The notes under the pieces: model-generated
Told to the model about the DNA's origin: nothing
What the model saw: the letters and a program-made list of their open reading frames with translations, nothing else
The model's database searches: none
Assembly (NCBI GenBank): GCA_964187785.1
Contig: OZ076421.1
Location: 10,416,001 to 10,480,000 of the forward strand
From: Amphiscolops sp. MND2022
Taxonomy: Eukaryota
Direction of reading: 5' to 3'
Length of the DNA: 64,000 nucleotides
Shown: piece by piece, positions 8,761 through 63,277 of the stretch
How positions within the stretch are numbered: position 1 is the first letter of the stretch
Layout: every line of letters starts with the position of its first letter
Position numbers and translations under genes: made by a program

Positions 8761-8890
8761 AATAGCGCCAATTATTTCGAGAGCAAATAGTGCTCAGTGC
8801 TAAATGTGTCTCAGATTCCAAAATTTTATCCAATAGAGTAATTCGTACGCCTACATTCCGCAACACGTATATCCTGTTTCCGCATTTTTT

Positions 8891-23440: not shown

Positions 23441-26400
23441 CGAAAATTTGTGTTTTTAGACCTTCCCTTTCACATCAGAAAAACATTGCCCTTCTTTTTC
23501 TATTGCGTACGGTAATCGGTTCAAGACCGTAAAATATTTCAAAACAAGAAAAAAAATTCTGGAAACAATCTTAACACTAACGGTATTGGTACATCCTGAC
23601 TTCTTCTCCAGCAGCAATCTTTTCTTGTTGCTTCGTGCAATATTTGGCTCTTCTTTGATGGCGCTCTTTACTTTTTTTTGGTCGTGAAAATCTGACCACA
23701 TTTCTCGCACGTCAAAATCTGGGCAACTTGTTCCTGCTTGCTGACACTTTTGCATCCGGGAAGATGACGGGTTAAGTGCCATTTTCTTCCAGCAACGTAG
23801 TCGCAATTCGAACACGGGAAACCTAAAGATAGCCTTTTGAATTATACGAGATGAAGAAGTCAAATAAAAAACCAACCTATACATACAATATACATACCAA
23901 AATCAGATTGTTTTCCACGAGTTACAAAAATGATAGGTTTCATTTAGATTGCTGGAAACTTTGAAAAATGGTAGACATGATATATTGATCCACGTGATGT
24001 TTGATTTGTCAAACTATTTATCATTTCAATTTCAATATCAAAAAATGGAGATTGTCGCTTGTCAATTGGAATTGTCAAAACGAGTACAAGAACGAGTAAA
24101 TGGAAGTCTTACGTTTTTTAGGTGGCGGAGTGGTATCTCGAAATTCGTCACAGAGTTGTCGTTTTCGGTTTCTGGCAAACCAGGGCAAGTGCGGGCATGA
24201 ACAGCAAGGGCTTCTCGAGTGGGGGCATAATAGTCGCAAGCACCGATTGTGCAGAGATGACCTGAGTAATAAAACAACGATGAAAATATATACAAAAAAT
24301 GTGAATATATTCAAAAATTATTTTTTGAACACCGCTGTTCATACAGCCTCAAAATTTCAATACAAATAAATCCAAATAAAGTAAAGAAACGTTCATCAAA
24401 TTTTCAAACATTTTTCACCTTCGCAGTTGAATTTACCCGTTTCAGCAGTTTGATAGTTTTTGACCTTTTTCACTGATAGTCAAGAAAAAGTAACGCAGGA
24501 ATTAACGACTTACCAAGGAACAGTTCTGATGATGAGTCAGATGAGTCCATGCGGGATCTAAAGTTCTGCGAAGTGCTGGGTCCGCTGGGTCCGGGGGCTT
24601 GCTCAGAAGTACTTTGCTCAGAAGCAGCTGTTTTCTTCGATTTCGGCTGTAACAACTTGAAAATGTGAATAAAAGGTCCAAAATATCAAGTGCAAATAAC
24701 ATGAAATTTAAATTAGTTCAAACAACGAAGACAAAATTGTTTACGAGAAAGTTTGGATCTTTCCGTCTCATCCCCCCATCGATTTAAGTCCCCCAGTTAT
24801 TATTAAATAAAAGTTTTATAAATTACCTTTAAAAAAATATTAAAGTATCTCATTAAACATACAATTTTTTTGGAAAAGAATCTGCGTAAAACAATTTGAA
24901 AGTTATCAGGACACTGTTTGAAAAACTGCCCTAAACTTTGAACCAGAATCTGCTACTCAATTGTAAAATCAATTACAGTAGGGGGCTTTTATAACGACCC
25001 AAAGGGGCAGTTGATTTTAAACTGATAATTTCCTGATAAAATCCAAAAACAGTTTCTTGGAATTTGGGATTAAAATTGAAACAAGTAGAAGCCAAGACGC
25101 AATGAATAGCTAACTTTAATTTCGACGCTCTGAATACTTTTGTTTATTCCAATCTTGGAACCAATCTTTGAAAAAAATCCATAAGCAAAATCAATACAAA
25201 GACACTTTAGTGAATTCCCAAATACCATAAGAGCAAATATCATAAAACGAAATTAGTTTCAAATGACAAAAATGAAATGAGTTTGACATTATAAAATAAA
25301 ATTGTTTACGAGAAAGTTTCATTTTCATGTTATTTGAACCTAATTTTGTTTTTATGCTATTTGCTCTTATGTTATTTGGTACCTAATCGACAATTTTTCA
25401 ACCAAAAATTTATTTCCGAAAACGAAAAAATCAACTTACCATTATGATTGGCTTCGGGTTATATCCGTTGATTGGCTGAGGGTAGTATCGGCTGCTGGAT
25501 GTCTGCAAAACTTTGAGTTGTTGAGAGAATCAAAGAGAGATTCAATGGGAGATTCTGGCTTGTTAATCAGTTAACAGTCCGAACGGTGAGAAAACAAGTT
25601 TGACAATGAAAACTGCCGGTCAGTTAGCAATCAGTCAGTTGCTGTGATACGCGCCGCTGATACGAGCCGCTGATTAGCCAATAGGAATCACCCACAGTTG
25701 GAACAGTCATCAGTTTGGTACGAGTTGCTGATACGCGCCGCTGATTAGCAAGGAAATTACTCACGATTGTAACAGTAATGATTTTGATACGAGCCGCTGA
25801 TACGCGACGCTGGTGAGCTTTCAAGCGATGACCGATAAGGCAATAACAATCATATCTGTTCTAATATTGTTGACAAGCAATAAGTTTAAAAGCAAATAGA
25901 AAGCAGTTTCTCGATGACCGTGTAAATTCGAGAATGTTCTAGAAAATATTCGAAAAAAATATTCGAATACGAAAAATCTTAATCTTTTGCTGTTTATTCT
26001 TCGCCTCGAATCTTGATAAAATTCAGTACGAATTTGGCCTCTAAACCTGAAGCATAATACATCATTGGTTGCTTTCATTTTCACGCCCGAAACGATCAAT
26101 AGAAACCGAAAATCTATAGTTAACGATTTCAAATATCGTTCAAATAGATATCATTTTGATTAATTTTGCTCAGATTCGACCCATGATTGGAACCAAAATC
26201 TCCCCATTTCTCCACTCTAATTATTCAAATAAATTTTTCATTTTCCAGTATAATTTATTTCAGTATAAATGTAGTATTTCACTCTTGTGTATCACTATAG
26301 TATAAAAATATTCCAGTATAGTATAGTGAACATTATAGTTAAGTATAGTACAAGTAACCTGAATCTTTTCAATTGCATTCTAATTGACTATTTTAATCAA

Positions 26401-26493
26401 ATTTTTATTTTTATTTATCTAAGCAGCTTTACGATTCGACCCACGATTGGAACCAAAATCCCCCGAATTCCACGAAGATTTTAAAATTTCATT

Positions 26494-26676
26494 AAAATAA
26501 TTTATTCCAGTTGGTATCAATGTATTTCACTTTTGTATATCACTATGTACAATCAGTATAAATATTTTGCACTTTGGTAAAGTGTTGAAAGAAATTTTCC
26601 TTTTTCGTTTTTTTTTAAAATTCATTTTCAAATTTCATTTTTTCAAATTCAAATGCAGTCTGTATAATTGTAGTAC
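26494..26676 (+). repeat. 183-bp direct repeat, right copy
   Basis: Matches 8891-9073. Confidence 0.9.
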
Positions 26677-26999
26677 GATAGTATAGTATAGTATAGATGA
26701 AAGGAAGAGAAGCCGACAGTTTTACGGAAAAAGAGACATTGATTTTAACTTGTTTGTGGAAATTGACTTTGTATTTACTCTCCGGCTTATTAAATTTGAT
26801 TTCAGCTAATTAAAATGTAAGTGGAAAGTAAGACGCTGAAATTTGCAGCCATCTGATTGGTTGTAATGCACTTTGTGGAATCCAAGACACGAATTTGGCG
26901 GCATCTTGTCGGCATTTGTCGGCATATTTTTGGTCCCAGTTTCCGCAAAATGAAACCGGCTAACGTATTAACCCATGCCCTCGGATTCCGAAAAACGCC

Positions 27000-42872: not shown

Positions 42873-45430
42873 TTTTCATGTTCCGACGGACCGAGTTCCG
42901 ACGGATCGGTAAAAGACACAGTTCAAATTCAGATGAAGAACTATCATTAGAAGTAGAGTCAATCTTCATCTGCTCATAGACTTTATAAACAAAGTTTGCT
43001 GTGGGTTGATTTGCAATTTGTTGTCCAGGGACAGTTTGAGGAATGGCTTTGTAAAACATTATCACAGGCACTGCAGTTCCCAAAAGTGTACCCTTTTCTA
43101 CTCTTTGCACATTACTAGTTAAGTTTCCTAAACTGATCTACAGGAAACCCGTCTCCCCCACGGTTGCCACGGTGTCTTCTGAAAATCTTGCATTTTTCAA
43201 CAAACGGTTAGGCGTTTGGAAGTTTATCAACACGGTTCGAAAATAAAAGGTCCCAGGTTGTCCGCTAATATGTTTGCACGCAAAACGCCGCGTTCAAAAT
43301 GTTGCAAAACGACATTTTGTGCTATCGCCACCGACGTGCTAAGTGACTCGTTTCTTCCGTTACTTACATAAGCTTGCGCATGATACCAGACGGGCTCGGA
43401 GGGGGCACGAACAATGCCTTTCATTGCTGTTGGGTCAACCAAGACTTGGTAGGCACGTAGGAATTTCCGGCCCAATAGGAAGTCTTCCACGATCATGGCA
43501 TCGTACACAACAACAAAGTTGGTTTCTAATTCTGCCAGCCCAAAAGTCTTGATTGTCTTTCCATTGGCAGCATATAGATCAATACCATTATAAGGTCGGA
43601 GGATCGTACCGGTATGCACTGCTAGTCGAATATAGGCCGAAAAAGTAGAGAAACTCCAGAACCAGTGTTGATCAGCCCTAGCAATGTTACCGGGGCGGCA
43701 TCTGGAACGAAGAAGGATACCATGAGCGACGCACGCTCATTGATCCTCGCTTCACCCGTAGACTCTTGAGCATCGATCATGTAGCAGCGCAGTTGTTGTG
43801 GTCCTAACAGGTTCCAGATTCAGGGGAAAAGGCATCAATGATCACCGTAGCTTCGAAACACATGTCAAGTACATCAACACATACTTTAACGGTGGTAGGG
43901 CAGTAAGCGTGATACGTTGACGTGACTCCTTTCATTTGCCATTCCTCAAGTTGGGGCAGAGTCAAGTGCTGGTAGCTTTCATTGGCAATTTCGTCTTTCA
44001 GAATTTCGATGGTAAGCTCTGGGCGTTTCTCTCGCTCGATAGCCAATAACAATCGAAAGGACAAGGATCGTTCGTACAAATGGGTCGAAAGTAGTAGGTC
44101 CAAGTCTCGTTTGTACTTGGATTTTACCATGTGAATGTCAGGGGTGTTGATACGTGGGCAATATCTGCAGGTCGTAGCATAAGGACAGTTTCCCTACCAC
44201 TTAGCGTTTGAGGGACAGGTTGCTGTTCAGCCCAGAGGCTGTAAGCCACGTCCTCATGTACCGGAACGTTTTGGCATTGTGACGCTGAATGCTCAGTCGT
44301 GCCGCAATTGAGACAGAATATTGGGCCCGAGCAGGCAGAAGCCACACTACTTTCACGAAGATTCACCTGATCGTCTGGGCAGCACGAGCCAATGGTTTTC
44401 TTGTTTGGTCCCTAGTTGGACACTCTCGTGCAAAATGACCCGGTTGCCCACAGTTGAAGCAGGCTCCTTAGGGAGCCCCCGCTGGTTGTTGTAGTATGGG
44501 CGCCTGTTTCACTGACGAGGGTAGCTATCGGGAGTTTTGCATTTTGTTGTTCTGGACTTGGTGGTAGCACGTTTTGTGGTATACCTGGTGCTGTATAGAC
44601 CATCGTTCCCGGTATGAAAGGGTGAGGTCGTGATCGCATGTCATACCAGGGATCATAGGGTTTGGACGTTGTGGGTCTGTGTCGCTGAAGCTGCTTTGTT
44701 GTGTATCTAAGAGACTCCATGGTGGGTGGATGGGTGTCTCGGTCAAGTAACTTTCGGCTGCGAACACTACAGCAAGCTCTTGTCGTAGTGTTGGGTCACT
44801 AACACCGTTTATGAAACGTTGCAAGATCTCATAACGACCTGTGATTGGCTCGTCTGGAAAGCCTTGGGTGCGCAGTATTTGGAGGGCGTCAAGATATTGC
44901 ATCCAGTGTTCATTTTCTTGTTGGGTACGAGACATGAAGGTTTGTCGAACATCCAGACGGTTTACGGTTGCCTCTCGTTCCAAATCTACTAGCCAGGATG
45001 GTGAAGACTTTGTCTGCCAGTGGTTTGTCTCGTTTAGGTTCAGATTTGTTGACGATATAGTTTCTTGCTTCTCCTTAGAGGTGGTCTATTTTGGCCCAAG
45101 CTTTGTCGATTTTGATGGATTTAGCATGTACCCGTTAGAGAAATCGTTTCATTAGAGGGAGCCAACCGTCAACGGTGCCCGTGGGTCCGACTCTCGTCTG
45201 ATCTCGATTGGCAATTAGTGGTGCCAATTCCTTGGACATGGCCTTGGATATTGCTTCAGTGAACCTGAGTTGGTCCGGGGACATGGTTGTCTCTTCCTTG
45301 GTAGCGAGTGGCAAAAAGCTTTTTCTCCGCGTGGAGTTGATAGAGTCATTCAAGTTTTCTGGAATCGTTGCTTCTTTGCATCTGGTGCTGCTGGCGCATC
45401 GTCTGCAGTGTGAAATTCCGCCGTCGTTAT

Positions 45431-46080
45431 CCCCCCAATGTCGCATTAACGGTTTGGAAGGTACTAGTTACTTCCGTTAGCTTGCTGATGCATGTGGGTT
45501 CTCTTAGGCCTGTGATACTCTTGCTTGAAAATTCCACCGTTATCAAACCACTGACAGGATCATTCGATAGCCCATAGCGTCCATGCGTGCAGCTCGAATC
45601 TCCTGCCCATGTGCTTGTCGCTCAGTAGAAGATCGCAAATTGCTCTTTTTCAGAACAAAATCATGATTCCAATCAATTGATTTTAATCCAACATCCTTGC
45701 CTAAGCACGATAAACATAGGGCACAAAAAATTATTGGTTAGATGTAACGACTCAATGAGCGAGATGAAAAAAAGATATAACACAAATGTTTAGAAACATT
45801 TAACGACAATTACGTACCAAATAACATCAGTGCAAATAACATAGAAACAAAATTAGTGTCAAATTCCCCCAATGTCCTATTAACGGTTTCGAAGGTACTA
45901 GATACTTCCGTTAGCTTGCTGATGCATGTGGGATCTCGTAGGCCTGTGATACTCCTGCTTGAAGTTTCCATCGTTATCAAACCACTGACAGGATCATTCG
46001 ATAGCCCATAGCGTCCATGCGTGCAGCTTGAATCTCCTGCCGCTGTGCTGGTCGCTCAGTAGAAGATCGCAATTCGCTCT
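45431..46080. repeat. ~215-bp direct duplication of gag sequence flanking a ~210-bp filler copied from 48895-49106
   Basis: 45431-45645 matches 45865-46080; the filler 45655-45863 matches 48895-49106. Confidence 0.9.
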
Positions 46081-47248
46081 GGAGAGCCTCAATTTTTTCA
46101 ACGACAGCCTGGTGCTCTCGAGCGCATCTCGCCTTTCGCTTTGATAGTTGGGGGGCAGCTTGCTTCACTCCTATTTGTGCTTACAACCTTAGCTGCCTCG
46201 TGCACTGCTCGGTAGGCGGAAGATCGGCCCGATGCGGCCATAGATAAGATGAAGTTGAAGGGGCGAATCGGGAGGCACCATGCGTTCCCGTGGTGCTCGT
46301 CTGTGCTAACAGGGCTGGGGGCTGTACTTGCCTTCCCTTCCCCGATGGTGGGGAGGTGGTAGCCTCTTGGAAGCGTGCCGTGCCCTGGCGTAATTCATGC
46401 CTCCGATATAGGACATCTGTTGCAGCCATTACGACGCCAATCGGAGAAAAACAGTGACAAATCTGTTGTAGTCTTATGTGGATTTTTCAACTGCATTATA
46501 ACGCATGTGTTTCAAGAATTGATGAGTGAATTATTTTTCTGGATTTTTGCACTAATACTGCGTGCAACCTGCGAAGAATCACCAAAAGAGAGTTCCACTC
46601 GTTTCTCTTGATTCTTGAATCTGTATGGATTCTTCACTGAGCAAATTTTAGTTTGCGTGGATTCTTCGCTAATTAGTTCACTCATTTAAGTTACTACACT
46701 TTTGTGGATTCTTCGTTTTGTATGAATTCATCGAAATGCCATTAATTAAGTAGAATGTTTAAAAGACAATTCGATATACCCCCAGTTTGCCAAACTCGAA
46801 AATTCCCTTTTTCTATTTGTATTGAAACAAATAAGGTTTACGTAAAAATAAATAAAGACATGTAAATATCTCCCCGTTTGACAAATTCAAAAAAAAATAC
46901 TATTAATTTTATTGAAAGGTATTTTTGTAACAATTCTAGGAGCGTTCAAATAGATTGTATTGAAGTGAGCGAAGTCATTTGTTAACTACAGTTAATGCAA
47001 TACATTTAACTATGACGTCACTGCTGGCCTTTCGGTTTCGTTCTATGAAAATATCGTTCAGTCCCGACATGGTTCGTAAAAAGATTTACGAAATTCAAAC
47101 TTCTTCGTGAATTCATTCATTTCTTCCGTCACTCTATACAAATCTCTAAAATCTCTACAAATCTATAAATCTTCATTCTTATTCTTCCTTCTAAACTTTT
47201 ACCTTTCTAAATCAACATTCGCCAACCAAATTTTTTCATTCTAAACAG

Positions 47249-47483
47249 CTCAATAGATGAGGGTGAAAAAACGGCTGCTTCTAAGAATAAAGAATGCAAG
47301 ATTTGCCTCGAAAACTTTAGACCAGTAGAATTACAAAGTTTTCACCCAGATTATAGTTGACATTTAGCTTGTAGAGAGTGTATAAAACACTGTTTAGATA
47401 GTTTAGCGAGTGCAGATTTTGTTAGATGTCCTTACTGTAGATTGATTACCTGTAGAGGGTATTTTGTACAATTAAAACTTTGA
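47249..47483 (+). pseudogene. RING-finger (C3HC4-like) exon with an in-frame stop
   Basis: Follows acceptor CTAAACAG; reads ECKICLENF...PDYS*HLACRECIKHC...RCPYCR. Confidence 0.65.
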
Positions 47484-49431
47484 AAAAAATGTAGTTAGCA
47501 TGTTTTTGTAGTAGAATTTGTAAACTATACTTTTGAGACCTTTCAGAGGCCACGTTCTTGACGTTGGTCGTGTTATGGGCGACACCATGTGATCCCCTAA
47601 CCGAGAACCTCTCTAAAACTACATTATACTGGGCAAAAACGTTAATCTCGGCTTGTATTTGTTCCCGACAAATTGTGTTATCGAGGAAATGGTTTTCAAA
47701 ACATCAACCGCAGGAATGAAAATGTAACTACTCCAGGAGCGTTTAAGAAAATTGTTTCAAATAGATACCTCCCCTGTTTGTCAAATTAAAAACAAATTAT
47801 ATTGATTGTAATGAAATAAATAATTTTGTAACGACTCCACGAGCATTCAAAGAAAATCTAATAAATACCCCTTCCCTCCAAATGCCAAACTCGAAAAACT
47901 TTAAGGAAACAGATGTTTTTGTAACAACTCCAGGAGCGTTCAAATAATTTGTATTGAATATTGTTTGCGAAAATGAAAAAAAATCATATCAATTGAAATG
48001 AGAAAATTACTTTTGTAACGGCTCATTTTAATTGTCATCCACACCTAATATTGACTGCCGGGGGATCTTTCTGTTAACCACCCCCCACAGTAAGCCCGAA
48101 AATAATATTCCCCCTGCTATCAGCGATGAGTTTTTGTTGCAGTTAAACATTATCTTGAAAAATGGTTGGAGGAGGGAAAACATCCCCGTGGAAAACCGAC
48201 AGTTTTATTTCACAAACGATGAGAGTGTATTAGGTGACTCTTCAAGTCCCAGAATACTCATGTTGCCCAAAAAAAATGAGGCCATTCAAATCAGCAAACA
48301 ATTTCATGATTTTTACTCGAATTGGATTCGTTCATTGAAAGAACTTTTTGTCACGTGACCATGACTCGCAGAAATCACTGTGTCATGTAAACTAATTACC
48401 TCCCTTGATCTATAAACGTTACTTGGAATAAGCTAAATTCTGCGCGTCATGGTCACGTGACAAAAAAGTTCATCAAAATGAACTTTTTGTGACGTGACCA
48501 TGACGCGCAGAATTTAGTGCGTCTTGTAAACAAACTTCAAAATCCCTCGTTTTAGGCAATAACGTTGCAATCAGTCGTTTTCTGAATCTCCTGAAGACTC
48601 CAAGAGTTTACCGAACACAACAAGAATTTCACGAAGACTGCAAACCCACTCCAATTTGAACAATCGAACAAATTCAATCTTCAAGTCAAGTAAGTCAAGT
48701 GTTTTATTTTTGGTACATTTTGAGCTTTTCCGTCCCAAAAATTTGCAGTTTTTCTAGTTAAAATAAGTATTTAGTCATATGTAACAACTCCATGAGTGCG
48801 ATGAATATAAGGCATGAAAAAAAAACGTTTAGTCTGATGTAACGTCTCCATGAGCGCAATGAGCACAAGGATGATATAAAATCCAGTTTTTTCAAAACAA
48901 AATCATTATTTCAATCAATTCATTTTAATCCAACATCCTTTCCTGAGCACAATAAACATAGGCCCAAATAAATTATTGGTTAGATGTAACGACTCCATGA
49001 GCGAGATGAAAATAAGGTGTAACACAAATGTTTAGAAACATTTAACGACCATTACGTACCAAAAAACAGAAATGCAAATAACATAAAAACAAAATTAGTG
49101 TCAAATAACGTGTTTAAGGCAACTCATTTCATTTTTGTGTGTATTTGAAACTAACTTTATGCTATTTGCTCTTATGATGTTTGGAATATCCTCGTAACGA
49201 CTCCATGAGCATGATAATGAAAGGACTAAATGCAGATGTTTAGTTAGATGTTACGACTCCAAGAGCGCAACGGATAAGAGTACAACATGTTAATGTTTAG
49301 CCTCATGTTTAGTATAATAAGGTAATGTGGTTGTAACGACTCCATGAGCGCGACAAATTCAAGGAAATAAGGAAACAGAACGTTAAAAAATCTAATAAAA
49401 AACAAGTTAATTTCTTTTTAGAAAACAGAAA

Positions 49432-52054
49432 ATGCCGTCAAAACCCCAGATGAAGTGTCTCAAGTGCCCTTACGAGTCGACCAGGTTGTTTAACTACAAC
49501 AGACACGTCGAAAAATGCGACGGGCCCAAGCCGGTGGCGGAGGTGGCGAGCGGAAGTGGTGGCTTCACTTGTTTACAAGCTGTGTCGACAAAAAATGCTC
49601 TCAAACGTCATCAGCAGACAGACCCAGAGCTGTCCCAAGAGGGCGCGTGAATTGGCAATTGGCTCAAGGTCACTCCCCAGCACTGAAGGAACACAGTAAG
49701 TTACTGATCTCAATACAAACCTATCTACAGAAACGGTCTTGTTACAAATCATAAGGTTACACGAATCTTTTATACTTTTGAGAAACTGATGATAGTTTGA
49801 TATTTGTGCTTGCAGTATAGAAATGTAACGCCCATGTTTTAAGTTGGTGTTTGTTTTATTTCAGAGTCTGTAACGGGGAAACTCAAGCCAACGAGCTGTG
49901 AGGGGTGTCAACAGCAGTTTTCTTCCCGGAGCAATCTGCTGCGCCATCTGGAGAGAGCTCCGCATCACAGGTTCAAGGACATGAACTTCTCGCGGTTCCC
50001 CAGAAAGTCGGCCCAAGACGGCACTTACACGTGAGGGAAATTCGACCTGAGAGCTATGCTACTAAATACATAGTGTATTCAAGTATTATTAGGTCCAACT
50101 GTGTATTGCAAGTTTGAAAGAAATGAAGGGAATAAAAAATATTTAAAATGTTAAAATTATAGCTGCCCTTAACAGAATACAATACAACAGATGTCAAAAC
50201 TCAAACTTTTTCTTGCCTATAGGTAGTTTAAATCAAACATTCATTCCGAATTAGTTTTTTGCTAGGATAATAAAGACTTTTTTGAACTAAAAAAATTTCG
50301 TAGTTGTTTTTTGTTCTTAGGTACTACGAGCACCTTGAGGGGACGACTGAGAATACCATCCCAAAGTGCGTTGTTTTTGATGAGGTCGTGGACAACCAAA
50401 CGAAAAAGATCTTCTCTTATTTGTCCCATGGTTTCCCCATCCTATGGAAAGGAGCCAGGGACAACGCGGAAGGCCTCGTCAATCCACATATTCCCGAGGA
50501 CAAGGCAACTCAGTTTCTGCCACTAGCAGAACATTTGTTGCAGCATGTTGCCAACCCGGATGTACCCATATCAGCAAATTCGGCAAAAGTGAACGAGGTG
50601 AGATTTTAAACTATAAACTGCTGTTGACTTACAGAAACACTCTCCTGGATTTAGGAGCACGCATAATAGGCAAACGCAGTCATTTATCGCTGAGAAGAGG
50701 CCACAAACTTTTATATTTGTATCGTTGTGAAATCATGGACCACTACCTTCAAATTAAATATTCAATGGTTTATTATTCAGTGATGGATTCTTCGCAACGT
50801 GTTTTATCATTATTGTCCCATTTCTACTGCGTTCACGCAGCCAAAACAAAATTGTTGAAATCACATCTTTGCGAAGAATCCACAAAATTGTTTATTTTGT
50901 GTAGTTTTGAAATCATGGACTGCTACCTATTATTTATTTTTCCAATGGTCTATCATCCAGTGGTAGATTCTTCACAACGCGTTTAGTCACTATTGTCTCA
51001 ATTCTACTGCATTTTCGCTTTGGACAAAAAATCGTTTTTACTGGAGTACAAAATGGATTTGCAGATACGAAGTTTGACTAGAGACGAATATCTGGCGGAA
51101 AGCAATCCGGGCTACACTACAAACAGCCCGTGAAGGACTCTTTCCTGTGAACGTGCTAGATGTCAACCTTCAACATGCGGTAATGAGACATTTAGATAAA
51201 ATTGAAGCTAATTTAGAAGTAGAGTGAAGAAAAAAATTTTAAAAAACCTTTCTAAGTGAGTGATAAATTAGATTTCATAGGTGCCCAGTTCCCATATGTA
51301 AACGAAACAAAATCGTCGTCGCAAAATTTTCTTCGTAAAATATACGAAAGCCAATTTCTCATTTTAAGTAGTTCAAGTACATTCGTTTTTAGATATTTTC
51401 ACCACCTACTGCGATACGAAAGGACGCAATCGACCGCTATGTTGAGTCAAAACTGGCAGCTTCTCAGAGCGATGGGTACTTGACGGAGAGCACGTGGAAC
51501 ACCTGCTGCTTTCCAACGACAAACGCGTCACCCCGTGGCTCAATGATTTCGCAAGCACGTCAGTTTCTACGTGGTACTGGGTCAGAAAATCTTCTGGCTT
51601 GTTGAGCCAACAAAGAAAAGTACTTACAACTCTTCCACATTGGACAGTGAGAAAGACCCTCGCAGCCTGTAAGTAGAAACATCATACTTCGCGTCATTTC
51701 CTTAAAATCTATGTTCGTTTAGTGTATCGGAAATAGACAATGTCTGTGGGAAAAAATCGTCGTTTTTTGGGTAATCCTAAAAATAAGCACCCAAATTTTT
51801 TCTATCAAAACCCCCATTTATGTTTATTATGTGTGCAATTTAGAACAACATGTTTTGGAGATCTGCAGACGTTAGAACGGGGCTGTCATAGGATTCACAC
51901 AAGGCCAGGACTTGCCATTAGTTTGCTTTCAAGGTGGATTCACGGTGTCCTAATCCTGGGCGACTCAGTGGCACCCGGTGCCAATATTTTGAGGTTTGGG
52001 AACAATGGATTAACTGTGGGTGCCCACATCCACAATGAAGAAGATACACGCTAA
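49432..52054 (+). pseudogene. Zinc-finger + JmjC gene, paralog of 20330-25442, with frameshifts
   Basis: Fingers CLKCPYESTRLFNYNRHVEKC, FTC..STKNALKRHQQ and CEGCQQQFSSRSNLLRHLERAPHH. SHGFPILWKGAR matches RHGVPLIWRNGAK in A; also FPVNVLDV, WLNDFASTSV, GQKIFWLVEP, RWIHGV. Two intron positions are shared with A. Confidence 0.85.
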
Positions 52055-52430
52055 AATATTATATACAGTAAAAATACAACATCACTATACTTCCCTTACG
52101 ATCACTAAATCTCAAACGAGAAAGTGAACATCCTTTGTAAACATTAAACAGCAGAAACAGCCTCCTTTTTTTATTTTGTAACGATTCCGGGAACATCTTT
52201 GGCAATCAATTCAAAATGCTATATAAGTCACAGCCCCTCCCAATATTTTGTAACGACTCCAGGAGCATCTTTGGGGACCAATTCCAAACAAGCCTCCAAC
52301 AATATTTTTGTAACGACTCCAGGAGCAGTTTGTCAGGGAACACAAGCTTAAATTTCAAATAAACAGTTGCAACATTATAATTGTCATATCTAACACCCCT
52401 CCACCAATTGTTCTTTTGTAAATTGTTACT

Positions 52431-53051
52431 TTGAGTATAATATTTGTGTATTCCATATATCCCGGTTTGACGACAGTTTGGAGTGTGTTGTTGTACAACT
52501 TCCGCAAGCTATGCCACAACTATTTGGGTGATCAGTACAGGCACCTTTTTCACAAAATGTCAAAGGACATGCAGGATGAAGTAGCCACCACACAAATAAG
52601 TATTCAAGAAAATTATGATTGGTCTTTTGTATTTGTGAGCATTCCACAAACTGATAAATACTACGAAGGGGGTGAACTTCAAAATTGTCTTAACAGTATC
52701 TCAATAGTTTTCAATTCGCCAATGGAACTGTAAGGAAAACTTTTGTGTTTGTTACAGGTTTTTCTTGGCTTCAACATAGCCCTGTTCGACGAACAACCCA
52801 GGAAAACACAATATTCAGGTGGACGCTTCTTACACGTCAATCTGAAAAAGACAATGATGTCCCCCACCCAAAACCGCAAATCGATGATCATGGTTGGGTC
52901 CGATTTTCAACCAGCCATCCCTTCATGCAACCAGCCACCGTATGCTGAAGACGATCGGTGTGAGGCAGTAGATAGTCTCACATTGGTCACGCGAGAGATT
53001 GCAGCCACTCTGCAGCTGCTCATTACCCACCAAAGAAGTAGTTGTTTATGA
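52431..53051 (+). pseudogene. Possible 2OG-Fe(II) oxygenase-like relic
   Basis: YYEGGELQ and QYSGGRFL...MIMVGSDF resemble the GG-containing strands of prolyl-hydroxylase-like dioxygenases. No intact HxD...H. Confidence 0.25.
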
Positions 53052-54044
53052 ATAAAATGGTACGTCTGCATTCAAAAGAACTTTCACCTTCAAAGTAATC
53101 GTTGTCCAAAATCTGCATTTAACTAATCCTTTTATTAATTTCTTCTTTCATTTTGTATGTTCTAGAATTGCCAAGTCATCCAATGGTTCCCCACCCGTTG
53201 ACACTCGCTCGCAGATTTGTTAGGACTGCATGTTATTGTTTCAGAAAGGAGCCTTTCAGAAAAAAATTCGTTACCCGCTATTTCGAAGTCAGGCGTTGGC
53301 TGGAGGCTGATTTCATGAATTACAGAGACGTCATTGCAGTTGCTCCGTCAGCGCATAACTTCCACTGTACCAAATAAAGATAAATAGACTTAGTTTACTT
53401 TTTCGAAGATAATTGTCTTTTTTCACCAGTTACAAAAATGCAAAGTACTATTTCATTAGTATTTTTCAATTGAAATAAAATTGCAAACCATTTTTACATG
53501 AGATTTTCAAACGTAGGTTCATATCAGTTCTATTGTTGTGAAGGCAGTCCTATTGCTGTGAAGAATCTACAAAATATAAACGAACAAATTTGGTTTCAAT
53601 TCGTAGACCACAACCTTCATTTTTCACTCTCGCAGGATTTATCATCCAATTACAGACTCTTCACTCCATGTATAGTAATTAGTCTCTTGGTTCTACTGCG
53701 CAATTCGACGTAAAATTTGAAATCAATTCGGTATACCCATTATACAGATTTATCTTTATTTTCATCCAGTGGTGTCCATTTAGGAACTTTTTCCTTCCTA
53801 ACACCCCCCTCAACCACACACACTTTGTGAAAGAATCTAGTCTTCTCGGTCTACTAGATTTCGTTTGAAAAGGCAAACAAGTCAATAATGAGTAACTATC
53901 AATATGTGTCAAAAATAATCAACATTCACAAACAACTGTTTTGGACATTTAGTATAACAAGAGACAGCACGACCCTGCTATGTAGACTTTTCAAGGTTTC
54001 TTTATCAGTTATTTAGTAGTTTACTATCATTTTGATATAAAAAA

Positions 54045-54127
54045 GTTCTCACTCGGGGAATTGAACTCATTCGGAATACCTTTTTGGCAAAATTTCAATA
54101 GCGCACTATCCATGGTGCTAAACGGAC
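54045..54127 (-). repeat. Degenerate tRNA-derived SINE head
   Basis: Minus strand TAGCACCATGGATAGTGC (A-box-like) and GAGTTCAATTCC (B-box-like). Confidence 0.3.
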
Positions 54128-54624
54128 TTAATAGTTCCTAGTTATATTTTGTTTACACTGCAAACGCAACAATTTTCCAGATGATGTTTTTGCAAATACT
54201 TATAGTTTTTCGATATAGTTTTTCTGTAATACTTGATTACAAACCAGAATCCTTCAGTTTTAAATGTATTCCCGAATGACAGTTTTTAATTGGAACACAA
54301 ATTTGTTCACACTATTTTCCCTATTCTTCAAAAACTGTGGGGGGGCGGGGTTAAGGAAAAAGAATTTCCATTTATATTAATTAAAAGATGTTATATAATT
54401 CAAAATATTAAAGAATAACTGCCATAATATAAAGTTTCATGCCATAATACATCAGTTCTGAAAACTGAATATTCGATCCTGTTATGAACGCATTTTGAGC
54501 TGGATTTTCTGTCGAACAACATAAATAAAGGTCATTTAAATTATTGTAGTTATGGCTAATTTAAATAAAATGTAATAGTTTACATTTTATTTAAATTATG
54601 AATAAAAGTGGATATCACTGTTTT

Positions 54625-54905
54625 TATCAAAAAGGGATGCAGTGGCGGATTGAACCTTCAATTGGGCCTCCCTATCGTTTGTGAAAGGGAACGAAGTCTC
54701 TTGAAAAAGGGATGCAGAGAACCTCAAATTGGGCTTCCTAACGTTTGTGAAAGGGAATGAATTCTCTTGAAAAAGGGTTGCAGAAAACCTTCAGTTTGGT
54801 TTTCCTATTGTTCGTGAAAGGAATCGAATTCTCATCAAAAAGGGATGCACTCTCGTTGTTCGACTCATCAAAAAGGGACGCAGTGGCGGATTGAACCTTC
54901 AATTG
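54625..54905 (+). repeat. Tandem copies (about 4, ~65-75 bp) of the 5-prime end of the small-peptide gene
   Basis: AAAAGGGATGCAG...AACCT(T)CAA.TTGG...TGTGAAAGG repeated. Confidence 0.85.
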
Positions 54906-55117
54906 GCATTTTTATTGTTGTGAAGCTTAATCAGACCGATCATGATGTCTTTATCGAGTCGCCTAACAGTGTCTATGTGAGAATCGATCCAGTGGTAGAC
55001 AACTCATATAGCATCACCACATACCCACGTGAAATCTCAAATGCACCACCATCCCCAAGATGCCGTTGTGTTGTACACAAAAAAAACTCACACAAACTTA
55101 ATCTTTCGTTTCGCTGA
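54845..55117 (+). CDS. Small unknown protein, paralog of 9785-10048
   Basis: QWRIEPSIG...IESPNSVYVRIDPVVDNSYSITTYPREISNAPPSPRCRC. Confidence 0.65.
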   Translation: MHSRCSTHQKGTQWRIEPSIGIFIVVKLNQTDHDVFIESPNSVYVRIDPVVDNSYSITTYPREISNAPPSPRCRCVVHKKNSHKLNLSFR

Positions 55118-56309
55118 TCGTTCACTTGCATATTATTTTTAGTTTGTTCTTAGTAATGATTGATTTTTGACAACCTCTTTACTCAAAGAATAAATTTTCA
55201 TTGAGTGATGGCTTTCCGAAATTGAGAAATTAACTTTATTACATGATTTGGAGAAACTAGATATCAAAGTTTAAATACTGCGAATCATTTTTAGTATTGA
55301 ACTGATTTTGAACAATTTTTGAAACCTATTTTATGAATTTTGCGGTAAATTTCATGGAGTGTCACTATTTTACGCGCCGTGAAATAACTACCATTTTAAT
55401 TCACAAAAGATGTGAGTGTATTTGATGACTCATCATCAGGGTTGTTCAAAAGATATTTGATGCCAAACATTATTCTCCAATTAACTGTATTACACTCAAC
55501 CAATTTTCAAAACAGAAACAACCCCTCTCATTTTTTTAACAACTCCGGGAGCAATTGTTTAGGGATAAGAAGCTTGTTTTTCAATTACAGGTTAATGCAA
55601 TTTTAGGTTCTCATTATCTCTCGTTCTCGGTACTTTCGTATTCGAGAATTCAAATAATCAATAAACCAAACCATTTAGTACGAAGTTTACAAACGTAGGT
55701 TCATAGCAGTCCTATTGTTGTGGAGAATCCACGAAAATAAACGAACAAGTTCATTTCAATTTCGTGGTCCACTACCTTCTATTTTCACTCCCGCATGTTT
55801 AATCATCCAATTATAGATTCTTCACACCAAGTATAGTAATTAGTCTCTCAATTCTACTGCGTAATTCACAATGTAATTTGAAATCAACCCATTGTACAAA
55901 TCTAATACAATCAAGGGGTGCCAAAAAATAATTGAAAATAATCACCTTCTTAACGTCAACTTTTTAAATGCGATCGGTGAATTTGAACTCAGTTTTGACT
56001 CAAATAACTTTTGATACACTCTGAATGTAATTTGAAAATTAGTTAAACGTTTCTAATAAATGCAGTGTCATGGCAGTTTAAATTGCGTCAAAAAATGAGT
56101 TCAATTTTTTTCCAATTGATTTAACAACTATAAGTACACAATTCAAAATCATTGCTTTCATCACCTAGACCAATTACTCTCGCAATAACCAGCAGTTCAA
56201 ACAATTCAAAACAAATTCTTCATTATTCTAGACCGATTACTCTCGCAGCAGCTCAATTTTCAAACTTTTTACTTTCCCCGTTGATTTCTGACTAAACCAA
56301 AACTTCATA

Positions 56310-58720
56310 ATGTCGGAACCTCTGAGAAACATCTCAATTGGTGATTGCGACTTCACGCAATATACTCAGTCCAGTCCTTATCTAACCCTTTTACAACCTG
56401 CACAAACACCTAATGAATTTCACTTTAATAGCACTCCTGCGTCGATTCATCGAAGTTACTTCTCATTTCACGAGTCCTATATGGGCACTACGATCCCTTG
56501 TCCGCCCAACGTTTCTCAAATATTGGCAACAAGCGAAAGCACCCCCCGTATATTACTCAAAGCAGCACATCAAATTCTACACAACCGGGCGATTAAGCCC
56601 AAAAAAACCAAAACGAATCGAGTGCACTTTCTACAAGCACCTCCTTAGAGCGCAGCCTCGACTTTCCTGCTAAGACGTGCCAATTGCCCCAACTGACAAA
56701 GTCAATACCAAAATTGCCCCAACTGCAGTTGTCGGAGAAAGTCGAACCCGAAATTGAAAAGACATTAGAGGGGGTTTTAGAAACGTACGACAAATGTGGA
56801 GCGCTGACGTACCAGCAACAATTAACCCTTTTTCACGGCATTGTCACGTACCTAAACATGTATGCCGAGCCAGTGGCAGTGATGACAAAGAGCATTTTGG
56901 CTGTGGCAGGGCATGCTGTCACCCAAGGTATGATACATTTTGATGACTTGAGCGGGAATGACAATTGCAGATTGATTCTCGAACCATCTTTGGGTAAATA
57001 TACTGGACCTTTTTTTTAAAACATGAAGACGACATAGGATGTTCTGTGTAAAGTTAAAGATTTTTAGCGTATGGTACGAAGAGGTTTTTTTCAATTTGAT
57101 AATTTCAACCAGATAAAATCATGCGGACGTATAAAGTGTTGAAATGAGAATATAAATTAAAACATAAGACAACAAATTAAATGACTAAATCTAGAACTAT
57201 AAAATGAGATCGTTTCAGGAAACACTATTCGAGTAAAACACCGTGTCGAACGATGGATGGTGAACGCGATGCGGGTGTATCACTTTAATGTGAGCCCTAC
57301 TTTCCAACGGAAATCACCAAGAACTGTGACGAGAACATTTCAACGGGAAGAAGGTGGCGTCGAAGAGGTTGCTACGGAGCATTCCTTTGTAACTTCGAAA
57401 AGGAATGCGAACTTCAACCCCAGAACTATTGCTGAGGAGTTCGTGGACAAGGTAAAAACTGAACCATTAGGAGCACAGAGAGCTTTGGGAGTCTAAAGTA
57501 GTAAAATTTGTTGTTTCAAGTAACGGGTGCACAATTATTTTGAAGTATAATTTCCGTTCTCTCATGTAACAACCCTTTTGTCAGATTATCATCGCACCAT
57601 TCAAATTTTGCCGCAGTTGTGTTGCTTTAAAATTGCGTACTCACTCTGTAGATGGAAGAGAAGGCCAGGGAGACAGTGGATGATATACTGCTGGGGTATG
57701 TCCACGAAGCACTTCCTCTGCCTACATCTAGCAACGCCCGATTCAAGAAGAAAACGCAAGCCATCGCTGAGATCTGAGCCCCTGTTGACAAGGCCGGTGC
57801 TGCAATACACAGTATCACTCAGCGATAGCTGGGTCCTTACGTTGTCAGACGCCTCAATGCGCAGCGAGTTGCCCGCCAAGTGCTGTGAGCCAAAGAATTC
57901 CTTGCGTTTTGTGGCAGCAAACGCAAACACACGGTACCCACCAGGCAGCGACTCATAGAATTTTACGTCAAGAACTCATGGAGCACTGAAGAAGACCTGA
58001 AAAAGGTATCTTTTTGACCAGCAGCATTCGACAGATTGACTTCTTTCTTCAGTAAAGCAACGGTTACATTGCATGAGAAGGAATATCAGTTACACTGCAC
58101 AAAAAAATTACCAGCAATAAAATAGCTAAAGCCAAGTAAACAAAAGAATAACTAATTATCAGTTTCATGCTGTTGTTATAAATTTAGACGTTCAAGTTTG
58201 TCACAGATCGATTGAATCTAGAGGCACTACAGACTCCAACAGTTTCCTTTCGCCACGATGTCTTATTCCTGGCAGCTCATAACGAACAAACAGATACCTT
58301 CAAGAGGACGCTTGACAGACGAATTAAGTCACAGCAATGGCCATCAATCTGTGACGTTCACGTGAAAGGCTTGGGTCGAAAGATCCTAATCGAATATAAC
58401 GGAGAAGAGATCCAAGGAATGAGCAGCGAAGACAATCTCGAGATACCCGGAAACCAAGTCGAGTATCTCTTCCAAATTCCGCAAAAACACCTAATCGACG
58501 CCTCCAAGGAAATCTGCGACGAACATCCGATCAACCGGTGCCTTGAGAGATTAATTAATCACAAGTCGTCCAAGGAAGCAAATGTGAAACCGGTGCTAGT
58601 AAACATAGCACAGAACAAAGACGTCCTGGTCATGGTAGCTTAGACTGACATTGCGGCATTCCAGGAACTTCGCTTCACTTATGGAGACGAAGAAGAGGGG
58701 AGTTTTTCAATTGAAAGATT
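56310..58720 (+). pseudogene. YR-like core + SET gene, paralog of 10623-13337 (exons about 56310-56993, 57219-57451, 57652-58005, 58198-end), with stops and a deletion
   Basis: HAVTQG vs HAVAQA; TEHSFVTS..NFNP vs TELVFVNS..NFRP; QRVARQ vs QRYARQ; SQQWP vs SQKWP; CDEHPINRCLERLINHK vs CPVHPDSRCMGRLANHS; FQELRFTYGD. Confidence 0.85.
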
Positions 58721-59367
58721 TCAGAATGGTTGTTCAAAAAAAATTCAAAGTTTTCCCAATAAATGGTTTTTTAAAAGAAAATAAGATCCTGGAGTTTTTA
58801 CCTAGTTGATACAGAAAGGTTTTCAAGAACTGTATCCGCTCGCGGAGTCGTTACGAGCTAATGCGAGCTAAAAAATCCACATATTTGGCTTCAACGCTTG
58901 TTCAGAATCAGTGTACATTACCTTTAAACAATTACTAGCAATGGTGTATCGTTGATATCTGGATTCTTCAAACCATGCCTAAGACTTAGTTTCTCAATTC
59001 TAGAGCGCATTTTAAGCGTGACCTGAGCTATTGCGATCTGAAGAATCCACAAATTTGGTTTCAACGCTTGTTCGAAATCAGTGTACTTCACATTTAAACA
59101 ATAACTAGAGAAGGTTTAACATTGATATATTGATTCTAGGGTAACTTTCTCAATTCTAGGGCGCTGTTAAAAACGCAAGCTGCGCTTTTTGAAAATGATA
59201 TAACTTTGAAATTGTTTATTTTTATTGAAATAAAATACTTGTCACTTGTTTCAAGCAAAATTTTCAAGCATGAGAAAATTATCATAATTTGATTCGAGAC
59301 AAACATTTTCAAGCAAATCAAAGTTACCTAACATTTTTTTCCCTATTTGCTGGAAAGATTAGCAATT

Positions 59368-62300
59368 TTATCGTCTGGTTGTCCTTCCTCTCTTGCTCTT
59401 TTTCTTGAATTTTTCAATGAAGTAAATCAATGATCTGTAATCAATGTCTGATATTCCGGGATTTATTTGTCTCTCAGATAATTGACGTTGGCCTTTGACA
59501 CAAGCTCGCTCAATCGCACCATCAGCAAACAAGTATTCGGAAGGGTCCAAAACACAGCCCTTTTTCGCAAAATCTTGATTGTATGCTATACTCAAAAACT
59601 TGAAATCGGTGAGGAAAAACTCTGTTTGATCCTTGTTTTGTTGCTTTTTTCAATATTTTCGTTGGAGCTGCTTTTCGTTGAGTGTTCGATGAACATGTGT
59701 CGCTGTCTGATCCGGAAGCTGAGTTTTTTTCACTCTGCGTTGCATTGAGCAATTCAATGTCATTTTTCAATAAAGTAAATTAATTTATGTTGATGAATGA
59801 CGCTCTGATAGTCCAAGAGCTTTGTCTTTACTCAACACTTCCCCCCCAAACGAGTAATTGTATCTTCCAAAGCTTCTCCAGTCGTTCCAGTAAAGTGACC
59901 AACCACGTGAAATAGAAGTCCACTCAGCAGCCTACTTGAATCTCGAGTGGCAGCTGTTTCTATTATTGGATGCTTGCATACATTTTTGCATTTTTCGGAA
60001 TAAGTTGTTGTCGGCTTGAATTGTTTCTTAAGCAAGTCAAATCTATCGCTCACTGGTATTCTTTGGTGTTTTGAAATTATGTCGATTTATTGGCAGTAGG
60101 AAAAGAAACCTTCAAAGAATAAGGGATCAGCGTTGTACAATTTTCCTCCGCCTGTTATTGTTTTGGGTTGGAAGTCCTTGTGAGCATGATGGTTCGACTT
60201 TTCCATCGCTTCACACATGTGTTGCCATGGACTCCGAACAAACTCTGTGTCCATTATCTGTGGGATTAGCAATATTTTCAATTTGTAGGGGGTGGGTCCG
60301 ATTTTCCCGGAAAAAAGACCAACGATGATTGATAATATGACTCAGACCAAAACTTAAATTGCTCCGTGTTTAGACCGTGTTTGGATGCCCACAAAATGAT
60401 AGTTCATTTATTCAAATTATGCTGCAAAAGATTTGCACAGTCGTTTGTTGTCAATATGTCTGATTTTGCATGTGTGGGTGCATGGGTTTCAAAACTGAAA
60501 AGGCATTGCTGACAGCACGCGCATTTTCTTTGTTTGTGTTGTCTCTCTTCTCAAAAAGGATTTGTTTTCCAAACACATTTCCAAAAAGGTTCGGAACTTC
60601 TAGCTCAATTTTTTTTATCAACGATAGCTACTAGCGCTGATGTTCCGGTTAGCCATACCGGTCAAACGGTTCCTTTTTTCAAATCAGATCCTTTCACTTG
60701 CAGGTCAAATTGAATTTTCGGTTTTTTTCAACGCCCTTCGAGTACAGTTTTCTTCCAATTGCTGTAGGGGCACTTTGCACACTTGTTTTTCGTTCACAAT
60801 TTTCTGTGCAGCTTGGTGGAGATCACTCTGAGCGCACCTTGGGATCATATGCGTTACAACTGGCATGACACATCTTATAATCTCAAGGTACACAAGTGAG
60901 TTTCGTGGGATTTTTTTCTGAACAGAGCTTTGAGATTCTGACGCATACAAGTATATTCATCCACATCTGTGGGTGGGAAGATACTTTTCAGATCCCACAT
61001 ACAGCGACAAGTCTGAAGGGTACAGGTTTGATGCATCGCTGTCTTGTCTATCACCGCATCGCCAATATGAGACAGTACAGAAAACGATTGTCGCCGGAAT
61101 AGGTGACCACCGCCCCTTGTGTACTCAACTCTTTTGTTTCCTTGTACAGCCACCCCGTCTCTTGTTTTCCAGCTATCTCTGGTCCCAAATTTCGCTCCAG
61201 TACGAATCTGCTGTCTTTGCCTCGGAATGTTTAGTATATCATAACAAAATTTACATTTGATGTTTCGATTGACGTTTGACACCTCTTAGTTTACCTTTGG
61301 TAAATAGATAGTATTAGATTTGGTATAGTGGACTGATTTCGAATTACACGGTCAATTACACAGTCGAATCACTATACATGGTGTGAAGAATTTATAAATG
61401 GATGGTTAAACATGCGACAGTGCAAATTGAAGGTAGTGGTCCACGAATTTAAACTGAACTTGTTTGTTTATTTTTGTGGAATCTGCACAGTAATAAAACT
61501 ACTTTACTGAGCGGCAATTAGAAATTACAGAACCGAACCAGTAAAAATAACCACTGAGACAAAAAATTTTATACTTGATGATTGCGCTGTCATTTTATCA
61601 GAGAAGTCTTGCAAAATTCTGAAACACAACCTTGTGTGATCAACGCCACCAATTTCACAACCATCACCCCACAAATCCATTTTCAGTTCAGATGTTTTAG
61701 CTCTCTCGTAACGAATCCACGCAACAAATTTGACACATGACACCAGATCACGACGGATTCCAGAATAGGTGGTTTCAGGCTTACACACCGAGATAAAGCT
61801 TTCCATGATCTGACTCTGGTATCTCTGGACTGCACGGTATGATGGTACGAGACTTTGGAAGTTTTCTAATTTATTGATTTTGAAGTTCGAGGATAGAGTG
61901 AATAGTAAGTCTTCTCGCGACTGAAAGTTAGGGAAGACTTTTTATTGACAGATTTAAGTGCTCTGGCTGTTTTGTTCTGGAAAAGTGAAGGATGACGTCT
62001 ATAAGAGCGTCGAAGTCGACGTTGTTTTTTTGCATGACGCAAAACGAAATTCCAATATGTTATTGGAGGGTTTTGTATTCTAACTACTCTTTTCCCTCGC
62101 GGAACTACGTAAGTCGTAGACTGATTGTTTCCGGCCTTTGGGGCAATTGTCTGCATTGTGAAACGATTGTTCACGGGTTCTAGTGACTCATCGGTTCCAG
62201 TTTGTGTACCAATTATTCTGTGTACCTCTTGCGGTGTTGGTTTGACCACTTGGTTTCCAGTGGGAAACAGATTTAGGCCTATCAATTTAGTTGTGATTTC

Positions 62301-62815
62301 CTTTCGAGCGTTTGTCCTTGGTATGTTTTTCCCACACTCAACAAAACTAGTTTCATCATCTGTGCCTGACAAAAAACTTTACTTTAAAAAAGGTATGCTC
62401 CCCGAGTCGTTACGCTGTTAGTTTATAAATGTTCTACAAATATGCATGCTCCTGGAGTTGTGATGGTTCTGGTACAGAAAAGCTGTATAGAACGTTTGTA
62501 TTTTCCAGGGGTTGTCAACGATTACTAGAGAAGCTGAAATAGGTTGTTAAAATGTTACTACAGAAGTTGAAATTGAAAGTGTTGAGTCTAAAATCTTACC
62601 TCGATGTAAATTGTGTGTCTTGTCTGGCCGTTTGTTTTCCAATTGATGACGAAATCGTCAGCTTTCAATGATGTTCCACAAATGACGTGATTCGTTAATT
62701 TTGCAGTTTCTCGATATTTGTTATTCTCATTGACTCCAGAAATTTGATCGATTAGGTTATAATCAATGTACTAAATACTGTTCATGAAAATAGAATTCTC
62801 TTTCCAGATTTCCAT
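59368..62815 (-). pseudogene. Transib/RAG1-like transposase + BRCT, paralog of 16479-19511, intron-containing and frameshifted
   Basis: LIDQISG..NKYR; MDLWGDGCEIGG; GKDSR...NLGPEIAG.QETGWL; TYSGDNRFL; PVVTHM; PYKLK; CEAMEKSNH; BRCT LLSGLLFHVVGHF...ITRLGGK; LDPSEYL. Confidence 0.85.
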
Positions 62816-63277
62816 TGTTGATGAGTGGATTGAAATGCAATGCATGTTTTGTGAAGATTTAAAATGGGACTGAGGTGTTTGGGCAAAAATTGAGTTCCAC
62901 ACTCTCTTTAAAGTAACAATACGATTCCAAACGAAAAAAGGAAATGAGCCCTAAATGGGACTCGTCGCGGGTTGTTATTTACACTTGTTGCATATGTGGC
63001 ACTTTAAACGCAAATTGAGACTCGATTTCTCACCTGTTAATTTTTGTTCAACTCCATGTCATTTCTGCCAATTTGAATTTTGTTCAACTCTAAGCAAACC
63101 TAATCTATTTGACTACAAAATACCCAGTATTTATAGCAAAAAGCTAATTCGAAATGTTGTCAAAGCATTTTAAACTTAAAGAAGCTGTTGATGCTATCGA
63201 CAAATGCTACATGCGGAGGCAGGCAGAAATAATTGAATTCATCGGGTAGTGGGAAGTAGTTTTTCGATGGAGAAAAT

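Follow-up and report, generated by a model that had tools for sequence, protein, structure and literature searches.

We report that a short sequence word, here called motif B, is repeated in the non-coding DNA of the B element, a dead copy of an approximately 20.5-kb cut-and-paste transposon in the genome of Amphiscolops sp. MND2022. The element lies in the right part of a stretch of 64,000 nucleotides (nt; GenBank assembly GCA_964187785.1, contig OZ076421.1, positions 10,416,001 to 10,480,000 of the forward strand), which is referred to as the window and from whose first letter positions are counted. Motif B is conserved among copies of the B family and confined to this family in the DNA examined, and related families carry words of their own at equivalent positions. 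Moreover, its constant 3' triplet corresponds to the triplet predicted for the first finger of a zinc-finger JmjC (ZnF-JmjC) protein that the element itself encodes. Judging from these features we lean towards the view that motif B serves its own family as the docking site of a factor encoded by the element, most likely the ZnF-JmjC protein, which would act in self-directed anti-silencing or activation.

Motif B arrays and their conservation

Motif B was searched for using an 18-nt pattern, YGTAACGACTCCANGAGC, and its 17-nt core, GTAACGACTCCNNGAGC, with up to three mismatches allowed, and the expected count was obtained from dinucleotide shuffles. The 18-nt pattern gave 19 matches in the window (six of them exact) against 0.16 expected. 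All but one of these (18 of 19) lie within 45743-62465, and the remaining three-mismatch match, at 13142, looks like a chance occurrence. With the 17-nt core 18-19 copies were found in the same interval, including an extra three-mismatch copy at 58785 on the minus strand. As a pattern-independent check, four B copies were searched with the 6-mer seed CGACTC, which gave 61 matches compared to approximately 16 expected; the seeded matches recover the flanking TAA and GAG, and the motif edges are sharp.

The copies form clusters of three to six in the same orientation, spaced by 56-104 nt, together with pairs and single copies (Table 1). The final copy of the largest cluster stops 83 nt short of the ZnF-JmjC ATG (49433), and the cluster at 52177..52326 is located 120-270 nt past the JmjC stop and upstream of the ELM2-like open reading frame (ORF). 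The copy at 55535 is downstream of the ORF for a conserved 80-residue peptide and upstream of the SET-fusion gene, and the copies at 58785 and 58838 are positioned between the convergent SET (plus strand) and transposase (minus strand) genes. The original prediction, made from the letters of the window, had placed a repeated motif upstream of the RING and ZnF-JmjC genes and downstream of JmjC, on the plus strand together with the plus-strand B genes and on the minus strand in and after the transposase, and both the positions relative to the genes and the strand pattern are borne out. The range then given, 45743-62414, does contain copies, but the one at 45743 is outside the element, in a duplicate that lies 560 nt to the left of its terminal inverted repeat. 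The proposed palindromic core (CTCC-A-GGAG or CTC-CAT-GAG), on the other hand, is not conserved: a CTCC-N-GGAG palindrome is present in some copies only, the two central bases vary by cluster (AG, AT, GG, GC, AC, AA), and the constant parts are GTAACGACTCC and GAGC, which of the palindrome leaves only CTC...GAG.

The 45743 copy is held by a 219-nt duplicate (45646-45864) of the region upstream of the ZnF-JmjC gene (48888-49106, 90% identical). This duplicate is situated inside a neighbouring high-GC retroelement and is flanked by 218-nt direct repeats (45429-45646 and 45863-46080, 92% identical); it looks like filler, template-switch repair or a small mobile unit.

Motif B contains a CpG (AACGAC), and across all B copies (position 6 of the motif, e.g. 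46932, 47729, 47926 and 48786 in the window) the commonest decay in old copies is a change from G to A at this position (AACAAC). This fits deamination of a methylated cytosine on the other strand, and hence binding could be methylation-sensitive.

Relatives of the element were identified by protein searches with the JmjC and SET exons among long contigs of the ENA assembly ERZ25074608. Two of these, L001 and L003, are 98% identical to each other; their identity to the window is 80-85%, that of L004 is 80-84%, and L005 represents a distant B copy (SET protein 62% identical, DNA approximately 70%). L006 belongs to a separate family, labelled C (SET 48% identical). The young pair was joined to give an intact composite of 20,521 nt (L001:6586-9375 plus L003:1-17731). 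With up to three mismatches, motif B is present in 15 copies in L001, 11 in L003, 17 in L004 and 13 in L005, and the composite has 20; none was found in L006, or in L002, a 1.1-kb JmjC fragment without intergenic DNA in which the count is uninformative.

The clusters are syntenic across B copies at intergenic or intronic positions, and de novo k-mer analysis ranks motif B first in the window copy, L001, L004 and L005. In L005 the flanks are unalignable, yet the word has been kept, and the motif there is part of a 54-nt tandem array of 5.1 units adjoining an inverted array of 2.1 units. Common to different clusters is only the 17-18-nt core. Of the 20 copies in the composite, 18 are outside all ORFs of at least 75 codons, which cover 57% of the sequence (P = 1.4e-5), and every intergenic region has at least one copy. 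Close to the right end of the intact relatives, past their last plus-strand genes, another two minus-strand copies are present. Copies in the composite are on the plus strand across the left 10 kb and on the minus strand across the right 7 kb, and those closest to the ends are 950 nt (left) and 566 nt (right) away.

As in the window, the ZnF-JmjC array of the composite ends 83 nt before the ATG, and in the intact relative the copies in the transposase gap end 41 nt before the Met of the second (main) transposase ORF; for the other genes the distances are hundreds of nt. Tracts resembling splice acceptors are present between the arrays and both the ZnF-JmjC ATG, directly before it, and the main transposase ORF, suggesting that some arrays may be intronic, e.g. 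within an intron in the 5' untranslated region (UTR) of ZnF-JmjC.

The family is many times repeated in the genome: at 80% likeness, 1,200-1,400 Logan contigs per run matched 46900-52400, with approximately 886 variant positions. Their summed depth is approximately 1,000-4,500, where exact single-copy pieces have approximately 45; this depth does not give a copy number but suggests tens of related element copies. Two segments, 49051-49109 and 47531-47639, reach summed contig depths of 64,000-113,000 (1,000-4,500 elsewhere) with sharp boundaries. The former starts with CATTACGTACC, which resembles the terminal repeat, and is the only part upstream of ZnF-JmjC that aligns with cassette A, the family A element in the window (25326-25387, 85%).

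Family-specific words and what may read them

No match to motif B with up to two mismatches was found in approximately 110 kb of other DNA, which includes families A (cassette A), C, F, G and H and all flanks, and an exact-pattern scan of metagenome contigs gave single chance-like matches, one per contig and without clusters, two of them in human-gut metagenome assemblies. In all the DNA examined motifs A, B, C and F exclude one another, and families A, C, F, G and H have words of their own at positions equivalent to those of motif B (Table 1). The notion of one motif per element, originally put forward for A and B, is borne out and general. The two family F contigs, one from a Tara Oceans metagenome and one from another marine metagenome, are near-identical, 2.5-3.1 kb long, and carry a ZnF-JmjC gene of the same group with ACATCTGTCGGTAGCA on both sides of the gene, which indicates that the system exists in other marine organisms.

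For comparison of the words, the family consensuses were aligned on the common 3' triplet with motif A taken as its reverse complement. H and C agree at 12 of 18 positions (p ~0.0003), as do G and F (p ~0.0005) and A and H (p ~0.0025), and G and C agree at 11 of 18 (p ~0.0065). In this orientation motif A shows significant similarity to H and G, and these link to C and F. On alignment, the A, C, F, G and H motifs are thereby classed as variants of one site of approximately 20 nt, in which the 3' triplet is constant, the 5' end is rich in T, the centre varies and the 3' end resembles CGTGAGC, and motif B appears weakly tied to this group. The earlier statement that motifs A and B do not resemble each other is correct for their direct comparison (9 of 18, p ~0.15), but it overlooks this indirect connection, in which A, as its reverse complement, is joined through H and G to C and F, and B weakly to C.

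The ZnF-JmjC protein has three C2HC/C2H2 fingers, with a zf-C2H2 score in L001 (30.1 bits) that exceeds the Pfam cut-off, and a JmjC domain recognised by Pfam as two exon halves. According to the canonical C2H2 rule, Arg at -1 and +6 reads G, and at +3 Asn reads A and His reads G. At -1/+3/+6 finger 1 has R/N/R in families B, C and H and K/N/R in G, all with the anchored triplet GAG, R/N/K in F, where the triplet is TAG, and R/H/R in A, where it is GGG. In all six families finger 1 fits the triplet at the constant position of the motif, and by their predicted contacts B, C, H, G and A conform to the rule; in family F both finger and site have changed, but Lys is a non-canonical reader of T. 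The contact residues of fingers 2 and 3 are identical in the composite and the distant L005 (TDAR, SSNR) and differ in C (SLAR, HYSR) and H (TVTR, RDSR), a divergence that, as far as predicted contacts can tell, parallels the variable 5' part of the motif. The co-evolution of motif and element-encoded binder suggested in the original prediction therefore has circumstantial support, in that finger 1 follows the 3' triplet across six families, and in that the contacts of fingers 2 and 3 are shared by two diverged B copies and differ between families. A SANT/Myb domain downstream of the ELM2-like ORF was considered as an alternative reader, and none was seen in the ORFs by eye.

From these data the following scheme is proposed. 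Motif B would be the B-family form of a docking site of approximately 17-21 bp, and each lineage within a group of 17-20-kb cut-and-paste transposons would keep such sites as same-orientation arrays in non-coding DNA, namely between genes, in probable 5'-UTR introns and in 3' regions. Local tandem duplication renews the arrays, and selection would preserve the core word alone. A sequence-specific protein encoded by the element would read them, for which the three-finger ZnF-JmjC protein is the best candidate; its finger 1 would contact the constant 3' triplet (GAG in B) and the diverging fingers the variable 5' part. The JmjC demethylase could in this way be concentrated in trans on copies of its own family, and host genes and other families would remain untouched.

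Several points weigh against this scheme. The exclusivity count covers approximately 110 kb of non-B DNA, and the likeness between the B and C motifs is weak (10 of 17, p ~0.025, uncorrected). The finger-triplet correspondence extends over six families only, and of its two changes one (A) follows the code cleanly and the other (F) is non-canonical. Moreover, the linkers between the fingers are long (approximately 17 and more than 50 residues), and although the GAN predicted for finger 3 is found as GAC at motif positions 6-8, the triplets predicted for fingers 2 and 3 do not cover the motif contiguously. The best ungapped match between motif and terminal repeat, ACGACGCCA / ACGACTCCA, shows a weak likeness (p ~0.05, uncorrected). 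Finally, 16 of the 20 B copies share the strand of the nearest gene, which fits a promoter or RNA-level role as well, and an index search gave four DNA-type runs of one sample and no RNA runs.

The foremost alternative, which we regard as unlikely, is that motif B functions as a promoter or enhancer module to which a host transcription factor binds, giving coordinated expression of the element genes without any element-encoded reader. Arrays upstream of gene starts, at 83 nt from the ZnF-JmjC ATG (window and composite) and 41 nt from the transposase Met, agree with such a module, as does the orientation of 16 of the 20 copies, which is that of the nearest downstream gene; the 5' half of the motif (TAACGA/TAACGG) also resembles a Myb-type YAACNG site. 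However, the words found at these positions differ among sister families of one assembly, and this is unexpected for a shared host factor. Copies are also present where genes converge and, close to the right end, past the last plus-strand genes, and the acceptor-like tracts between arrays and ATGs suggest an intronic location. A promoter for each gene would predict a fixed distance and orientation and absence from 3'-3' regions, and this is not what was found. A likeness to the ZNF143/THAP11 site (ACTACAACTCCCAG) was also considered and dropped, since it explains neither the family exclusivity nor the 3' GAGC.

Somewhat less probable still is that the copies are internal sites for the transposase, or for a transposase-derived regulator, which would function in synapsis or in activation of cognate copies, cf. 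Spm TnpA and AtMu1. The inversion of motif orientation between the two halves of the element would be in keeping with this, and so would the weak likeness to the inner terminal repeat (p ~0.05 for B and 0.014 for the reverse complement of A, both uncorrected), although this likeness is not significant once corrected for six comparisons. That transposases can be sequence-specific activators of cognate copies is described in a preprint on transposase activators (10.64898/2026.08.24.746577), which speaks for the same possibility. Families B and C, however, have nearly the same terminal repeats, with the common ends CATTACGA(C/G)GCCAA...GGGAA, and different motif words, and motif B is consequently not an end-recognition sequence. 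Its copies are found in all intergenic regions and are not subterminal, with none less than 900 nt from the left end, and both subterminal regions are instead filled by another word, GTGGATTCTTC / TTCAAGAATTGAC, in inverted orientation. Neither concentration at the ends nor co-variation with the terminal inverted repeat and the transposase was seen for motif B, and we infer that GTGGATTCTTC / TTCAAGAATTGAC, present at both ends of the B copies, is the likelier transposase-binding repeat.

It is most improbable that motif B acts at the RNA level as a sense element in introns or UTRs, i.e. as a site bound by a factor for splicing, export or evasion of small RNAs: most copies have the orientation of their own or the adjacent transcription unit, and those associated with the transposase are sense and located in a probable intron and 3' region, but the two right-end copies are antisense to the adjacent plus-strand genes, and single copies in family C are oriented opposite to their neighbours. 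Equally hard to credit is a motif without function, representing the best-preserved piece of a short repeat spread by tandem and dispersed duplication, for although tandem duplication clearly enlarges the arrays and units within a cluster share more than the core, only the core is kept across clusters and diverged copies, the flanks being unrelated, and the same architecture is seen with other words in five other families.

The B element and its genes

The genes of the B element were mapped by tblastn of cassette A ORFs onto the region together with Pfam, and all those mapped (RING, ZnF-JmjC, ELM2-like, 80-residue peptide, SET and transposase) are broken in the window copy. One of several lesions is an in-frame TGA at 47358-47360, in place of the Cys that belongs to the C-x-H pair of the RING consensus. 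At 46427 the window and L001 both read CATTACGACGCCAATCGG(G/A)GAA. The 22-nt terminal repeat is present in inverted form at the ends of L003, L004, L005 and the family C contig L006, and the element hence has terminal inverted repeats. Since L003 still aligns at 64000, the B element extends beyond the window.

Table 1. Features of the B element in the window, and motif words of the other families
Feature	Location	Strand	Remarks
Motif B copy	45743..45760	+	1 mismatch; in displaced 219-nt duplicate, outside element
Left terminal inverted repeat, CATTACGACGCCAATCGGAGAA	46427..46448	+	L001 similarity starts there
Subterminal cluster of second word (GTGGATTCTTC, TTCAAGAATTGAC)	46475..46720	.	
Motif B copy	46926..46943	+	3 mismatches, decayed; approximately 330 nt upstream of RING ORF
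RING ORF	~47255-47470	+	
Motif B cluster, 3 copies (47723, 47827, 47920)	47723..47937	+	AGG/ACG type; between RING ORF and ORF 48032-48355
ORF	48032-48355		
Motif B cluster, 6 copies (48780, 48838, 48985, 49193, 49249, 49332)	48780..49349	+	ATG/AAG type
ZnF-JmjC gene	49433..52054	+	broken; C2HC/C2H2 finger exons, then intron-split JmjC domain
Motif B cluster, 3 copies (52177, 52249, 52309)	52177..52326	+	GGG/AGG type
ELM2-like ORF	52734-53048	+	
ORF for conserved 80-residue peptide	54863-55078	+	
Single motif B copy	55535..55552	+	3 mismatches
SET gene	58188-58688	+	
Two motif B copies	58785..58855	-	58785 with 3 mismatches, 58838 with 1 mismatch
Transposase gene with BRCT tail	59835..62833	-	broken; homologous to cassette A transposase
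Two motif B copies (62397, 62448)	62397..62465	-	210-nt gap between transposase ORFs 62591-62833 and 61869-62378
Family A motif, GACCCACGATTGGAACCAAAA	window	all one strand	11 copies, up to 25 with looser core pattern
Family C motif, TTTCTAAACCGTGAGC	L006		23-29 copies
Family F motif, ACATCTGTCGGTAGCA	L009/L010, Tara and another marine metagenome		5 copies in approximately 3 kb
Family G motif, TTTTGATCCCTGTCGTGAGC	L012		11 copies
Family H motif, TATCCACCGTGAGTA	L011		approximately 12 copies

A 150-180-nt unit containing GTGGATTCTTC recurs within the element at 50691-51036, 53544-53726, 55706-55887, 58855-59137 and 61307-61503, i.e. in several intergenic regions as well as in the intron of JmjC, with both orientations represented. 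Family H has a related word, CAGTGGATTCCAC, in 183-nt tandem arrays (L011).

Upstream of the ZnF-JmjC gene, at 48345-48517, there are three copies of a 29-34-nt unit with the E-box palindrome GTCACGTGAC. These are direct and inverted, have arms that are 97% complementary, and lie just upstream of a donor-like GTAAGT at approximately 48690; this region may be the real ZnF-JmjC promoter. The sequence CACGTG is also found directly before the transposase Met in the intact relative.

With respect to the transposase, Pfam gave no RAG1/Transib match for the intact proteins of L006, L003 and L011, and an atlas search returned RAG1-like leads only, all of them sub-threshold. In the literature no paper was found that joins Transib-type transposons with JmjC or SET cargo. 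Cassette A is flanked exactly by 193-nt direct repeats (8889-9081 and 26492-26684, 95% identical), and the B-type terminal inverted repeat was not found at its ends.

Significance and comparison with known systems

Little is understood of the ways in which animal transposons evade chromatin silencing, and to our knowledge VANC in Arabidopsis is the only well-worked example of a sequence-specific anti-silencer encoded by an element. The private arrays, the zinc-finger JmjC gene in the same element and the match between residues and bases in six lineages together make a docking site for the ZnF-JmjC protein a directly testable hypothesis. Going one step further, it is conceivable, but we hold it only tentatively, that a zinc-finger-guided histone demethylase with co-evolving fingers and tags gives each lineage a private anti-silencing channel, an animal counterpart of VANC built from unrelated parts. 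If so, fingers and their target sites would have diverged together in nature, and programmable, self-limited chromatin editors might be derived from the system.

Among known systems, the gypsy retrotransposon has a non-coding cluster of approximately 12 sites for the zinc-finger protein Su(Hw), which controls local chromatin and transcription. Motif B resembles this array in that candidate zinc-finger sites are clustered in the non-coding DNA of a mobile element. Su(Hw), however, is encoded by the host and gypsy has a single cluster, whereas motif B arrays are family-private and occupy every intergenic region.

The TnpA protein of En/Spm recognises 12-bp subterminal motifs. The B element shares with the Spm TnpA and transposase-activator systems a (proposed) element-encoded binder, many copies of a short word, reactivation of silent copies as the suggested outcome, and opposite orientation on the two halves. 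It differs in that motif B shows no concentration towards the ends, varies independently of the terminal repeat and stands beside a separate subterminal word, and in that its candidate reader is not derived from a transposase.

A further parallel is VANDAL21, which has a 9-nt word in one orientation in its non-coding regions that is rare in related families and evolves by tandem repeats; the word is bound by the element-encoded VANC21, which removes silencing marks from the element's own copies (PMC5735166). Like this word, motif B is enriched in the non-coding DNA of its own family and rare outside it, and it is found in same-orientation arrays with tandem turnover, as seen in the L005 array. 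The differences are the animal host, the different kind of cut-and-paste transposon and the length of the word, 17-21 bp compared to 9 bp. Moreover, unlike VANC the candidate reader is a zinc-finger JmjC protein of the histone demethylase type, with predicted binding, and the likeness that we propose is one of mechanism only.

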